Shown here: positions 12,447-20,674 of the stretch, in pieces
Layout: each line of letters begins with the position of its first letter
Numbering within the stretch: position 1 is the first letter of the stretch
Source of the DNA: Macrostomum lignano
Lineage: Eukaryota
Direction of reading: 5' to 3'
Length of the DNA stretch: 64,000 nt
NCBI GenBank assembly: GCA_002269645.1
Contig: NIVC01001138.1
Coordinates: forward strand, 1 to 64,000
Program-made: the position numbers and the translations under genes
Notes under the pieces: model-generated
What the model was told of the DNA's origin: nothing
The model's input: the letters and a program-made list of their open reading frames with translations, nothing else
The model's database searches: none

Positions 12447-12836
12447 ATGTCCGGCGAACAAGCAGCCGCCACTGCCGAGACCAAAGAGACGGTGACTACT
12501 GAGCAACCGAAAGCGGAAGAGACCGCAGCAGCCGAAGCTCAGGCTCCCTCGACATCAGCGGAAACAACCGAAGACGCCAAGAAGGAGAAAGAAGAGAAAG
12601 AGAAGGCCAAGAAAGAAAAAGATGAGCAAAAGAAACGCGAAGCCGAGGAGAAGAAGCGCAAAAGAGAAGAGGAGAAAAAAGCCAAAGCGGAGGCCAAAGC
12701 CAAGGCCAAAGCTGAAGCTGCGGAGTCTGCAGCCGCTGGAGGCAGTTCAACTGCAAGGAAGCCGTGCTGGCTCACAGACAATACCGACATGGACCTGCTG
12801 AACCGGGACAAGAACCAGATTAACTGCCACGTCAAC
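12447..12836 (+). CDS. CAV: Caveolin alternative N-terminal exon 1a (130 aa, long E/K-rich segment)
   Basis: MSGEQAAAT...DMDLLNRDKNQINCHVN followed by the phase-0 donor AAC|GTGAGT; matches the caveolin DLxNRDPxxxN motif. Confidence 0.8.
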
Positions 12837-13349
12837 GTGAGTCCCCTCCCATATAGTATGTTATTAATCAGTCAAGCGAATCTATCCGATACGAATCAGC
12901 AGACATGCACAGTTTGACTTTTTCAACAGTTTTGCTTTTCGACTTGACTTGCAAGCCCTGCCAGTTCAGGCCATTTCTGCCAGTTCAGACATAATCTAAG
13001 CCAAGGGCAGCCTGGGTCCAAGTCCAATTGGGGTTTTTAGGCATCTTTTCGAGATTAGTCATCACAACGTCCAACTCCCCGAACCAACAGAAACGAACGG
13101 CCCCAGCTTTGTGGAGTTTAGGAATTCTTTCGCTCAGATACTTCGTATTTAAACAGCGTTAAGCAAGAACCTATTGCTTGTCTTTATATTCTTTGCTGTG
13201 CAAAATGCTATGCTTATCTACTGGCTCTCCTACTTGATACAGTAGTATCTCGCGAGTTTTCTGTCTGGTATAGGCTATTGGGAAGATAAATTCAAAACAA
13301 AAATAGAACTTTTCAAATACTCGTTAGGAAGCAATAAATATGAATAAGA

Positions 13350-13700
13350 ATTCTCTCTCCCTGTCTCCTCTCCATGTCTCCTCTCCCTGCCTCCCTCTCT
13401 CACTCTCCCTCTCTCCCTCTCCCTCTCTCCCTCTTTCTGTCTCTCTCCTTCTCTCCCTCTCCCTCTCTCCCTCTCCCTCTCTCCCTCTCCCTCTCTCCCT
13501 CTCTCTCTCTCCCTCTCTCCCTCTCTCCCTCTCTCCCTCTCTCCCCTCTCTCTTTCTCTCTCTCTATCTCTCTCCCTCTCTTCCCTCTCTCTTTTTCTCT
13601 CTCTATCTACCATGTCTCCTATCTCTTGTCTCCTCTCCCACTCTCTCCTGTCGCTGTGCCTCCTGTCTCCCTCTCTTTCTCTCTCCTTTCCTTCATAATC
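13350..13700. repeat. CT-rich low-complexity/microsatellite tract
   Basis: Read directly. Confidence 0.9.
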
Positions 13701-14111
13701 ACAACTATCTCATCCGCTCCCTCTGTCAGAAAGCTCCCTATCCTGTTCCTTTGCCTTCCCTTAGTACAGATTTCCTTCCAAAGTTCCGATGTGTGATATC
13801 AGTTCCCACCTCTGTCCTGACTTTGCCTAAATAGATTTTTATCACCGCAATTCCCTCTCGCAAACCGCGCCTGCCTGCAGACAGCGAAAAGCTTTCAAAA
13901 TGAATTTGCTTGCCCAAACTGCATTTGGGTATGGCTGCTGCGAACCCTGTACGCCAAGATTCTCTTATCTGGCCCGTGAAATGGATGGGGAACCTGCTGA
14001 CTGCTGCTGCAAAGAACACACGCTCTGCTTCAAGTAGAAATTCAAAAGGACACTAAAGTACTCTCCTAGCCTTTCGACTATAGGACCAATGCGTTGTTTT
14101 AAATCAGTAAA

Positions 14112-14490
14112 GGCGCCAAAATAAGTGTCAGTAGTGGCGCCAAATAAGTGTCAGTTAGGGCGCCAAAATGAGTGTCAGTTGGGGCGCCAAAATGAGTGTC
14201 AGTTGGGGCACCAAAATGAGTGTCAGTTGGGGCGCCAAAATGAGTGTCAGTAGTAGGCGCCAAAATGAGTGTCAGTAGCTTAGGCGCCAAAATGAGTGTC
14301 AGTAGCTTAGGCGCCAAAATGAGTGTCAGTTGGGGCGCCAAAATGAGTGTCAGTTGGGGCGCCAAAATGAGTGTCAGTTAGGGCGCCAAAATGAGTGTCA
14401 GTTGGGGCGCCAAAATGAGAGTCAGTTAGGGCGCCAAAATGAGTGTCAGTAGCTTAGGCGCCAAAATGAGTGTCAGTTAGGGCGCCAAAA
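14112..14490. repeat. ~24-bp minisatellite (GGCGCCAAAATGAGTGTCAGTTGG)n
   Basis: Read directly. Confidence 0.93.
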
Positions 14491-15089
14491 TAATCTCTCT
14501 ACTTCCAGACAGGTTGGTTCCTTGATAACTTGAACTTTACAGTCCTATTAATTGATTTTCGTAGTCGCAGTACAATTTCACTAGTGAATCAATATATCTG
14601 ACTGTGTCTCTCTAAATTATTTATGAATATTTTTACTTTCAATTCTTTAGATTTTGTTTTAGCTTACATAATTTGTGTTCATGCATACCAATATCTCCCT
14701 CCTACCCTCCATTCTCTCCTTCTCACCCTCCATTCTCTCCTTCTCACAATCCATTCTCTCCCTCCGTTTTCTCCCTCTCACTCTAACCCACGCTCTCTCA
14801 CGCTGCAATCAACCTGAAAATTTTCTTTATGGTTTTGTCACTAAACTAAAAGGTTTAAAGTGCGCTTATGTGAAGGTCCAACTAACAACATGCCCTGCTT
14901 TTCGTCTGGTCTTAAAAGACTACGTTAAAAGCCTTTTTAATGAGTTTTCCTACTCTGAAGTGGTGATTCAGTATGCAATAATCCATTGATGCATAAGTTC
15001 ATGGAGTTTACTGCTCAGCAGGAAATTACAGTACGTTATTCTATAAAGTAAGATAACGACAGAGTTTTGTGCAATTGATAGATATATTT

Positions 15090-15850
15090 AGATAGATGAA
15101 TAGATAGATAGATAGATAGATAGATAGATGGATAGATAGATAGATAGATAGATAGATAAATAGATAGATAGGTAGATAGGTAGATAGATAGATAGATAGA
15201 TAGGTAGATAGGTAGATAGATAGATAGGTAGATAGGTAGATAGATAGGTAGATAGGCAGATAGATAGATAGATAGATAGATAGATAGATAGATAGATAGA
15301 TAGGTAGATAGATAGATAGATAGATAGATAGATAGATAGATAGATAGATAGATAGATAGATAGAGAGAGAGATAGGTAGATAGGTAGATAGATAGATAGA
15401 TAGATAGATAGATAGATAGATAGATAGATAGATAGATAGATAGGTAGATAGGTAGATAGATAGATAGATAGATAGGTAGATAGGTAGATAGATAGATAGG
15501 TAGATAGGTAGATAGATAGGTAGATAGGCAGATAGATAGATAGATAGATAGATAGATAGATAGATAGATAGATAGATAGATAGATAGATAGATAGATAGA
15601 TAGATAGATAGATAGATAGATAGATAGATAGATAGATAGATAGATAGATAGATAGATAGATAGATAGATAGATAGATAGATAGATAGATAGATAGATAGA
15701 TAGATAGATAGATAGATAGATAGATAGATAGATAGATAGATAGATAGATAGATAGATAGATAGATAGATAGATAGATAGATAGATAGATAGATAGATGGG
15801 TAGATAGATAAATAGATAAATAGATAGATAGATAGATCGATAGATCGATC
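15090..15850. repeat. (GATA)n microsatellite
   Basis: Read directly. Confidence 0.97.
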
Positions 15851-19063: not shown

Positions 19064-19234
19064 ATGCAAGAAGACGAGTTTGAGGATGTCACAGACAGCC
19101 CTCGGGCTGGAGCTAGAGAGCCTGAGGTTTCCCAATCGCAAGTTGAAGTGAAACCTAAGAAGGCAGCAAATCAGGAAGCTGTAGTGATAGACCTGGTCAA
19201 TAGGGACCCTGATTTAATCAATCAGCACTTGAAG
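19064..19234 (+). CDS. CAV: Caveolin alternative N-terminal exon 1c (57 aa)
   Basis: MQEDEF...VIDLVNRDPDLINQHLK followed by the phase-0 donor AAG|GTGACA; a 91-nt intron separates it from exon 2. Confidence 0.85.
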
Positions 19235-19325
19235 GTGACATTTTAAACCTTCTTTCACAACTTTGACTATTTGATTTTATAAACTGTTTCTTTCAATTTT
19301 GTTGAAAAAATTTTACTCCTCCCAG

Positions 19326-19403
19326 GTGCAATTCGAAGACATCATTGCTGAACCGGATCCCACTGTCTTCAGCTTTGACAATGTGTGGACCTGCAGCTTC
19401 AAG
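19326..19403 (+). CDS. CAV: Caveolin shared exon 2 (signature motif)
   Basis: TTTTACTCCTCCCAG|VQFEDIIAEPDPTVFSFDNVWTCSFK|GTGAGT; FEDIIAEP matches the caveolin signature FEDVIAEP; 78 nt, phase 0/0. Confidence 0.93.
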
Positions 19404-19486
19404 GTGAGTTCTTTAATTCTTTAATTTTTTTATTAATAAAACTGATGTTAGCAAGGTTAGCACCCTTCAACAAAAAGTTCTCAAAA

Positions 19487-20360
19487 TTCTAAATTCCCCT
19501 AGATGAATTTCCACAGATTCTAAATTCCCCTAGATGAATTTCCGCAGATTCTAAATTGCCCTAGATGAATTGCTGCAGACTCTAAATTTCCCATAGATGA
19601 ATTTCTGCAGATTATAAATTCCCCTAGATGAATTGCTGCAGATTCTAAATTCCCCTTGATGTATTTCCGCAGATTCTAAATTCCCCTAGATAAATTGCTG
19701 CAGATTCTAAATTCCCCTAGATGAATTTCCACATATTCTAAATTCCCCTAGATGAATTTCCGCAGATTCTAAATTGCCCTAGATAAATTACGCAGATTCT
19801 AAATTCCCCTAGATGAATTTCCACAGATTCTAAATTCCCCTAGATGAATTTCCGCAGATTCTAAATTCCCCCTAGATGAATTTCCGCAGATTCTAAATTC
19901 CCCTGGATTAATTTCTGCATATTCTAAATTCCCCTAGATGAATTTCTGCAGACTCTAAATTTCCCATAGATGAATTTCTGCAGATTATAAATTCCCCTAG
20001 ATGAATTGCTGCAGATTCTAAATTCCCCTTGATGAATTTCCGCAGATTCTAAATTCCCCTAGATAAATTGCTGCAGATTCTAAATTCCCCTAGATGAATT
20101 TCCACAGATTCTAAATTCCCCTAGATGAATTTCTGCAGATTCTAAATTCCCCTAGATGAATTGCTGCAGATTCTAAATTCCCCTTGATGAATTTCCGCAG
20201 ATTCTAAATTCCCTTCGATAAATTGCTGCAGATTCTAAATTCCCCTACATGAATTTCCACAGATTCTAAATTCCCCTTGTTGAATTTATGCAGATTCTAA
20301 ATTCCCCAGATGAAATTCTGCAGACTCTAAATTCCTCTCTAGAGGAGCTTCCGCAGATTA
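19487..20360. repeat. 31-bp intronic minisatellite (TTCTAAATTCCCCTAGATGAATTTCCRCAGA)n
   Basis: Period of 31 measured directly (19501 to 19532). Confidence 0.95.
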
Positions 20361-20410
20361 TAAATTCCGTTCAAAGATTATTGACAATCCAATCCAACAA
20401 TGAACCGCAG

Positions 20411-20674
20411 GTGTTCACCTCGACGAAGCTGTGGTGCTACAGAATCATCTCGCTGATCTGCGCCATCCCAGCTGCCATCTGCTGGGGCATCGAGTTCGCC
20501 ATGCTGTCATTCTGCACCATCTGGTGCTGGCAGCCGAGCCTGAAGGCCTTCGACATCTCGCTGTGGTACACCCGCCGAATCTACGAGATCCTGCTTAAGG
20601 TGTTTGTCGAGCCGTGCTTCCACGCCTTTGGAAAATGTCTCAGCCACATTGTGGTCACGGTTCGACGGGAGTAA
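20411..20674 (+). CDS. CAV: Caveolin shared terminal exon 3 (scaffolding plus intramembrane domain)
   Basis: CCGCAG|VFTSTKLWCYRIISLICAIPAAICWGIEFAMLSFCTIWCWQP...EPCFHAFGKCLSHI*; aligns by eye with the caveolin F-T-x-T-K-Y-W-x-Y-R...P-x-A-L-x-W-G...F-x-H-I-W pattern. Confidence 0.93.
   Translation: MFTSTKLWCYRIISLICAIPAAICWGIEFAMLSFCTIWCWQPSLKAFDISLWYTRRIYEILLKVFVEPCFHAFGKCLSHIVVTVRRE

Follow-up and report, generated by a model that had tools for sequence, protein, structure and literature searches.

A probable variable/constant arrangement of first coding exons in a caveolin gene of the flatworm Macrostomum lignano

Mammalian caveolin genes can give rise to proteins that have the same core and different N-termini, as in the alpha and beta forms of CAV1 (and of CAV2), and the coding sequence of human CAV1 is divided into exons of 30, 165 and 342 nt, with an intron between codons 65 and 66. 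The beta form of CAV1 is an N-terminal truncation of alpha that begins at Met32, involving no duplicated coding exon and leaving the pin motif identical; it reportedly has an mRNA of its own, whose alternative first exon is non-coding, as Kogo and Fujimoto are said to have found in 2000. The two forms are cell-type specific and unequal in their ability to form deep caveolae (PMC5715436). Within human Cav1, residues 1-48 make up a disordered N-terminal variable region, and residues 49-60 (IDLVNRDPKHLN) form the pin motif, which contacts neighbouring protomers (PMC12330381). Here we describe a caveolin locus of the free-living flatworm Macrostomum lignano in which, unlike the case of CAV1 alpha and beta, both the N-terminal heads and the pin motifs of the expected proteins differ. 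The DNA analysed, hereafter the window, is the whole 64,000-nt stretch at positions 1-64000 of contig NIVC01001138.1 (assembly Mlig_3_7), and coordinates refer to it unless another sequence is named.

The region from 12.3 to 20.7 kb of the window is very probably one caveolin gene with a small variable/constant cassette at its 5' end. In the arrangement that we propose, the first coding exons, duplicated in tandem and equipped each with an ATG, an N-terminal variable region and a pin motif of its own, would stop at the ancestral phase-0 intron (the equivalent of the boundary between K65 and I66 of human CAV1) and be joined alternatively to the same exon 2 and exon 3. The expected products would have 239 amino acids (aa; from exon 1b), 170 aa (from exon 1c) and probably 243 aa (from exon 1a), with 113 identical C-terminal residues. 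The gene has two, and probably three, alternative first coding exons, which is an ordinary isoform mechanism already represented in public gene models; we hold the interpretation to be correct as regards 1b and 1c, whereas for 1a it is plausible though unproven.

Exon layout, pin motifs and gene models

All five exons lie on the forward strand. Exon 1a (12447-12836, 130 codons) has the donor GTGAGT; exon 1b (16419-16796, 126 codons) ends in PKVAGRRVTLERNKDYKEQMDIVTRDPNSLNIHCK before the donor GTTGGA; and exon 1c (19064-19234, 57 codons) ends in IDLVNRDPDLINQHLK before the donor GTGACA, with an intron of 91 nt between it and exon 2. Each of the three opens with its own ATG, closes with pin-motif sequence and is followed, at the homologous codon, by a GT donor in phase 0; homology among them is seen over their last 18-35 residues. 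The first constant exon, exon 2 (19326-19403; 26 aa, VQFEDIIAEPDPTVFSFDNVWTCSFK; acceptor ...ctcccag, donor GTGAGT), carries the signature motif or hook region, and exon 3 (20411-20674; 87 codons plus TAA; acceptor ...ccgcag) the scaffolding, intramembrane/spoke and C-terminal regions. An earlier reading of this DNA from its letters alone (the sequence-only reading) had given the same exon coordinates, motifs and phase-0 donors, all of which we confirmed in the sequence; the spacing of 3-4 kb that it gave for the first exons is less uniform than stated, the start-to-start distance being 3.97 kb from 1a to 1b and 2.65 kb from 1b to 1c.

Searches of both strands of the window by tblastn with the three conceptual isoforms (E<=10) returned a single copy of exon 2 (the FEDIIAEP exon) and a single copy of exon 3 (the membrane-domain exon), in agreement with the earlier count, and, at the same threshold, no vestige of a dead core exon anywhere between the heads. 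A six-frame scan with a loose pattern, [RK]D.{2,4}[LIVM][ND].[HNDQ] followed by an in-phase GT within 3 codons, found exactly three sites in the 64 kb, all on the forward strand and upstream of the core; block-shuffled sequence gave a mean of 0.43 such sites. The observation of three exons is not due to chance. Most of intron 2 is filled by a 31-nt tandem repeat of 28 copies (19486-20368, forward strand), and the intron is ~450 nt shorter in the homeologous copy described below. The repeat units end in CAG or TAG after a T/C-rich stretch, so that dozens of acceptor-like decoys separate exon 2 from exon 3.

The Pfam Caveolin profile (PF01146) matches all three conceptual isoforms with E=1e-41 to 3e-42 (142-144 bits, cutoff 25), and the match begins within the heads, at residue 113 of 130 in 1a, 106 of 126 in 1b and 39 of 57 in 1c, that is, inside the last 18-21 residues of each. 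When isoform 1c was searched against solved structures with phmmer, its residues 28-170 aligned with residues 35-177 of human Cav1 (7SC0, chain A; E=1.9e-34); in this alignment the boundary between exons 1 and 2 falls between K65 and I66, and exon 3 can be aligned through human residue 177. A nemertean, Lineus longissimus, and a clam, Mya arenaria, have the same phase-0 intron. The pin motif of exon 1c (IDLVNRDPDLIN) lies column for column on Cav1 residues 49-60, while that of 1b reads MDIVTRDPNSLN and that of 1a MDLLNRDKNQIN, with Lys where Pro is otherwise invariant. Judged by these alignments, each first exon encodes a variable region together with a private pin motif and is not merely a cytosolic head. 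The earlier description of one oligomerising core with different cytosolic heads consequently holds for the shared core but not for the heads as mere decorations, since each carries its own oligomer-contact motif. On the same grounds, and with FEDIIAEP in exon 2 as its FEDVIAEP-like signature motif, the gene is classed by sequence as a Type II (pin-motif-bearing) caveolin.

Two of the three expected proteins are present verbatim in public gene models: exon 1b joined to exons 2 and 3 is exactly GenBank PAA71788.1 (BOX15_Mlig000238g1), and exon 1c joined to the same exons is exactly UniProt A0A1I8GQY0. The GenBank annotation of this assembly was made from transcripts only, assembled de novo and with StringTie, merged with TACO and searched for open reading frames (ORFs) with TransDecoder (PMC5730564), and PAA71788.1 therefore counts as transcript evidence for 1b. 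The TACO setting used (isoform-frac 0.75) drops minor isoforms, and alternative transcripts were filtered before submission (PMC5730564), so that a missing minor isoform is not evidence against that isoform.

Homeologous and paralogous copies

Macrostomum lignano has at least three caveolin loci, here called A, B and C. Locus A comprises the window, a 98.4% identical copy (L006, NIVC01004274.1) and a homeolog (L001) with ~88-95% identity in non-coding sequence. Locus B, represented by two contigs (L002 and L003), has a core 82-85% identical to that of locus A, made up of one exon 2 and one exon 3; its 1b-type exon ends in ...KAPKVAGKRVTLERNQDEEQRLDVISRDPNGLNKHCK directly before GT, and 0.9 kb downstream of it a 1c-type exon ends in ...ISLTKRDPKNINQHLTA, again directly before GT. 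GenBank carries the 1b-type isoform of this locus (P0007) on one contig and the 1c-type isoform (P0009, PAA74407.1), which is transcript-derived, on the other, with identical cores. Locus C (L004) has an annotated 1b-type isoform (P0008) and an intact 1c-type exon, encoding MAAAVGGEQVEVKLEEKDLSVTDRDPKEINQHLK directly before GT, which has no GenBank annotation; the isoform predicted from this exon is exactly UniProt A0A1I8I343. In both B and C, 117-125 nt separate the 1c-type exon from the exon 2 that follows it.

Over the last 18 residues, 1b-type heads are identical to each other at 9-12 positions, as are 1c-type heads to each other (9-12/18), and 1b and 1c heads inside one locus at 5-8 positions; heads of both types have a (P)xVAGxxV segment in common. 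Because the heads group by type and not by locus, the duplication that produced 1b and 1c is older than the gene duplications, and the pair has been kept three times. This retention in three paralogues is the strongest argument that both exons function. The claim of the sequence-only reading that three heads are alternatively spliced to one core is thus borne out for 1b and 1c, by verbatim public models and by the layout of the paralogues, and not for 1a, which no model joins to exon 2.

In the 98.4% identical copy of locus A, exon 1b has a 1-nt frame shift relative to the window (NIVC01004274.1, 1220-1234), and the GenBank model for this copy, PAA47975.1 (177 aa), starts at an out-of-frame ATG and then rejoins the 1b frame. 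The shift may reflect a mistake in the assembly or a genuine lesion.

It could be supposed that the three heads belong to three separate caveolin genes whose cores were collapsed or lost during assembly. Macrostomum lignano is described in PMC10468722 as a hidden polyploid with many near-identical duplicates, and the introns of the locus are rich in satellites, both of which speak for such an artefact. The order 1a-1b-1c-2-3 or 1b-1c-2-3 is found, however, on independent contigs (window, L001 and L006 for locus A; L002 and L003 for B; L004 for C), exon 1c lies just 91-125 nt from exon 2 in every locus, and the same layout is present in a chromosome-level clam assembly (see below), so that we consider this explanation hardly credible.

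Selection was assessed by comparing the window copy (L005, NIVC01001138.1:6419-30674, identical to window 6419-30674) with the homeolog L001, using a binomial test against neutrality. The ratio of nonsynonymous to synonymous substitution rates (dN/dS) was 0 for the core (P=0.0001), with 0 nonsynonymous and 6 synonymous differences in exon 3 and 100% amino-acid identity in exon 2. For the heads, and on a base of 12 substitutions per exon, it was 0.26 in exon 1a (6 nonsynonymous and 6 synonymous differences, where neutrality would predict 3.7:1; P=0.025), 0.31 in exon 1b (P=0.047) and 0.26 in exon 1c, the last of these not significant (P=0.37). Pooled, the heads differ by 13 nonsynonymous and 13 synonymous substitutions (P=0.0018), and the sole exonic indel is one in-frame codon, with 4-5% gap positions in the aligned introns. 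These figures support purifying selection on the heads. Selection on all three of them, as had been claimed from the sequence alone, is upheld for the heads taken together and for 1a and 1b singly, but not for 1c on its own.

Exon 1a, choice of first exon and neighbouring features

The product of exon 1a (12447-12836, forward strand) has an acidic, Ala/Thr-rich start, a K/E-rich predicted single helix of ~53 residues and a pin-motif-like end, DLLNRDKNQINCHVN. A single-sequence AlphaFold2 model places a long helix at residues 43-95 (pLDDT 75-93), corresponding to the K/E-rich stretch, with the remainder, including the core, at low confidence. Neither tblastn nor motif scans found a 1a-type exon within 10 kb upstream of loci B and C, and by this comparison exon 1a is specific to locus A. 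In L001 the exon, at 7142-7534, is also intact, with 131 aa (one Lys codon is inserted), the donor GTAAGT and a stop codon immediately before its ATG. An apparent identity of 68% between the L005 and L001 versions of 1a in tblastn was rejected as misregistered within the low-complexity K/E stretch, the true amino-acid identity being 95.4%, with one inserted Lys.

Satellites surround exon 1a at 11564-12162, 13353-13685, 14104-14491 and 15089-15849; they include a 34-nt CT-rich repeat (13 copies), a CT microsatellite, a 24-nt minisatellite (~16 copies) and (TAGA)190. In the window copy, and there only, the CT-rich repeat leaves the 1a frame free of stops as far back as 11514; this long upstream open frame was dismissed as CT-microsatellite read-through, closed by a stop in L001.

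Exon 1a might be the first exon of a long isoform made of 1a, 1b and the core (372 aa, with two heads and two pin motifs), formed through an acceptor 9 or 24 nt upstream of the 1b ATG. UniProt A0A1I8IKV9 (P0002) is exactly such a join: it reads ...CHVN-RSV-MSQT... through the in-frame CAG at -9, whose AG is at 16408-16409 on the forward strand (ttctactcag followed by cggtcagtgATG) and is preceded by a moderate pyrimidine tract. A second model, P0005, from the L001-type copy, reads ...CHVN-LRSTLRSV-MSET... through the TAG at -24, and both acceptor paths are in frame and free of stops. Both models are, however, WormBase-derived predictions, and in-frame joins are favoured by gene predictors; P0005, moreover, is a 2064-aa chimera with an upstream ENaC-like channel gene. 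The TAG at -24 follows a purine-rich stretch that makes a poor pyrimidine tract, and the CAG at -9, present in the window and in L006, is CTG in L001, where 1a is conserved (dN/dS 0.26). The transcript-derived GenBank models, for their part, begin 1b at its own ATG. We consider the two-headed isoform unlikely. On balance, exon 1a would instead be expected to splice directly to the strong acceptor of exon 2 (ttttactcctcccag), because 1a is kept in L001 although the good acceptor at -9 has been lost there. With exon 1c, splicing from a phase-0 donor farther upstream to either of the nearby AGs (8 and 17 nt ahead of its ATG) would lose the reading frame, so that these sites give no in-frame way into the exon.

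Several points weigh against a cassette of three alternative first exons, and most of them concern 1a. In its pin motif RDK replaces RDP, which is invariant elsewhere, and its last residue is Asn rather than Lys or Arg. The only two models that contain it (P0002 and P0005, both in UniProt and WormBase-derived) splice it in frame to the 5' edge of 1b, and the transcript-derived GenBank annotation has no gene over 1a in either copy. A protein made of 1a, exon 2 and exon 3, in the window or the L001 version, has no exact match in the protein collection, and a homology search with the full 1a isoform saw the 1a head only in the cluster of P0002; the absence of a join between 1a and exon 2 carries little weight, because the collection is without RNA-seq-derived M. 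lignano caveolins for any isoform. To these points are added the small number of substitutions behind each dN/dS value, the fact that the 1c isoform of the window locus is known at the level of a WormBase/UniProt gene model, and the circumstance that the promoters discussed below are proposed from motifs alone.

A harsher interpretation is that 1a is an unused relic, either the orphan first exon of a dead tandem duplicate or a recent copy, which looks conserved because the copies diverged recently. Its absence from the 10 kb upstream of loci B and C would fit such a history, as would its absence from the transcript-derived annotation, the loss of the invariant Pro of the pin motif, and a nucleotide identity (96.9%) just modestly above that of its flanks (95.3-95.5%). 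A relic accords poorly with the observed 6:6 ratio of nonsynonymous to synonymous changes, with an indel that is single and in frame beside a neighbouring intron with ~5% gap positions, and with the preservation of the ATG, the donor (GTGAGT/GTAAGT) and the upstream TATA block. The stop right before the ATG in L001 delimits the ORF exactly at the exon, and no traces of dead core exons lie between 1a and 1b. We therefore think it quite improbable that 1a is a relic.

The conserved sequence upstream of each first exon bears on how the choice among them would be made. A TATATAA box (12345-12351, forward strand), 96-102 nt upstream of the 1a ATG and invariant in L001, is a candidate core promoter; ~160 nt before this ATG are conserved between L005 and L001, and homology stops abruptly ~165 nt upstream. 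A conserved TATA box and an abrupt limit of homology are what we would expect of a first exon with its own core promoter. Upstream of 1b, a 744-nt block is 95.7% conserved and contains CCAAT and GATAAAG (TATA-like), and the 300 nt upstream of 1c are 97.9% identical in aligned positions, compared with 92.3-94.8% in aligned intron segments. This suggests that separate promoters choose the exon, possibly with a contribution from spliced-leader (SL) trans-splicing.

The same layout could also be read from one long precursor, the alternative 5' ends being made by SL trans-splicing upstream of 1b and/or 1c. SL trans-splicing affects 38.8% of the genes of this species, and ~7% of its assembled transcripts are precursors that span more than one gene and contain several trans-splice sites (PMC5730564). 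AG acceptors precede the 1b ATG by 9 nt and the 1c ATG by 8 and 17 nt, and the one at -9 of 1b could be an SL trans-splice acceptor. That AG is, however, lost in L001, the regions upstream of 1b and 1c are conserved above the level of the introns, and the block upstream of 1b has the CCAAT and TATA-like motifs. A single precursor resolved by trans-splicing is in our estimation a real, if minority, possibility, and separate promoters are the mechanism that we favour. Whichever exon is used, the isoforms would differ in the contacts made at the protomer rim by the pin motif and in recruitment by the disordered or helical head.

Two tandem DEG/ENaC-type channel genes (1146-5352, forward strand) adjoin the caveolin locus on its upstream side; in them, four ORF fragments match Pfam ASC (PF00858) with E from 1e-25 to 3.5e-4; it is the L001-type copy of one of these genes that P0005 wrongly fuses to caveolin exon 1a. 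Downstream, a Ty3/gypsy-type long terminal repeat (LTR) retrotransposon (27304-31368, forward strand) encodes a gag-protease of 393 aa and a reverse transcriptase (RT)-RNaseH-integrase of 712 aa; it was assigned from these long open frames. It overlaps the range of a 539-aa gene call downstream of caveolin labelled 'PP2C_2 (weak)'. Farther along, on the reverse strand, a ~4.5-kb block at 56071-60574 has an extreme AT skew (0.59-0.64), and none of its three minus-strand frames is interrupted, the ORFs reaching 1478-1499 aa; presumably the block is a long array of satellite or low-complexity sequence.

Comparison with other caveolin genes and other cassettes

A profile search retrieved 149 caveolins, and two spiralian loci show variation at the level of exons. 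In Mya arenaria (L009; CP111025.1, ~8.646-8.656 Mb; locus 10001-19194), two tandem first exons with their own ATG, at 10001-10126 and 11223-11345, are 58% identical and 1.2 kb apart, and each ends in ...ARDPE.LH.... before GT at the same codon, with one core. The upstream exon with the core is exactly RefSeq XP_052778957.1 (isoform X1; also XP_052778958.1), and the second exon with the core is XP_052778959.1 (isoform X2). The clam gene thus resembles that of M. lignano in having tandem paralogous first exons with a pin motif, a shared core and both isoforms annotated; it differs in that its two heads are short (42 and 41 aa) and come from a lineage-specific duplication, with no long divergent heads, and in that its core is in three exons rather than two. 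We know this case as a database annotation, and a paper on it was not found. A GenBank model for the clam (P0058) fuses both heads, which is either the same predictor artefact or the same long form as in M. lignano P0002.

The Lineus longissimus locus (L008; OU342998.1, 10001-21626) has one first exon, one exon 2 and alternative last exons at 18730-18999 and 21360-21626; the products of this second tandem gene have 156 and 154 aa, and the exon at 21360-21626 has a near-identical counterpart in the last exon of the caveolin gene that precedes it in the tandem. Here too exon-level diversification is seen in a spiralian caveolin of Type II, whose two introns are at the same positions. It differs from the flatworm gene in that its heads come from whole-gene tandem duplication and the exon-level variation is in the last (membrane-domain) exon. 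Exon-level duplication of caveolin genes is recurrent in Spiralia and visible in public annotation.

In the literature we found no paper on caveolin alternative first exons, exon duplication or alternative promoters, or on a Macrostomum caveolin, the search having covered open-access papers only and being weak evidence on that account; a search of supplementary tables of M. lignano papers for the gene identifiers or for 'caveolin' returned nothing. A 2025 evolutionary and structural survey of caveolins leaves gene architecture aside and mentions exon, isoform and splicing zero times (PMC12330381). The view that the architecture had not been described is therefore sustained for the literature searched but not for the databases, which hold the Mya RefSeq isoforms X1 and X2 and the M. 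lignano models.

The locus offers a natural swap experiment, in which the hook, scaffolding, spoke and C-terminal parts are constant and the N-terminal region is exchanged together with the pin motif, which in the human Cav1 8S disc locks adjoining protomers at the rim. It could be used to test what the pin motif and the N-terminal region contribute to caveolin assembly and targeting, and M. lignano is genetically tractable by transgenesis and RNA interference. It also shows spiralian caveolin genes diversifying at the exon level, through first exons in Macrostomum and Mya and through the last exon in Lineus. The interest is limited by the fact that alternative first exons are ordinary and that public databases already contain two of the three isoforms. 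As a speculation to which we attach little probability, the caveolin discs of M. lignano, which lacks cavins, may be tuned by swapping pin and head, with isoforms co-assembling or segregating according to their rim contacts; the 1a helix on its RDK pin might then act as a coat, a spacer or a modulator of oligomer size, and exon duplication at one or the other end of the gene might be a recurrent spiralian route to caveolin diversity, replacing the whole-gene duplication of vertebrates.

The sequence-only reading had likened the locus to clustered protocadherins (Pcdh) and UGT1A, a likeness that extends to the chelicerate sDscam genes (PMC4835542): in all of them, tandem first coding exons with their own ATG and a donor of common phase are followed by shared constant exons. 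The analogy is sound for this layout but fails for scale and beyond the layout. The known clusters have ~10-60 variable exons, compared with 2-3 in M. lignano, and a promoter for each variable exon, where the flatworm locus has motif-level hints of promoters; exon 1b, unlike the first exons of such cassettes, has in-frame upstream acceptors (-9 and -24) in the window copy, and stochastic or combinatorial exon choice of the Pcdh type finds no support in this locus. The exchanged part differs as well, being a binding ectodomain or a catalytic domain in the Pcdh, UGT1A and sDscam clusters, and in M. lignano a disordered head with a 12-residue oligomer-contact motif.

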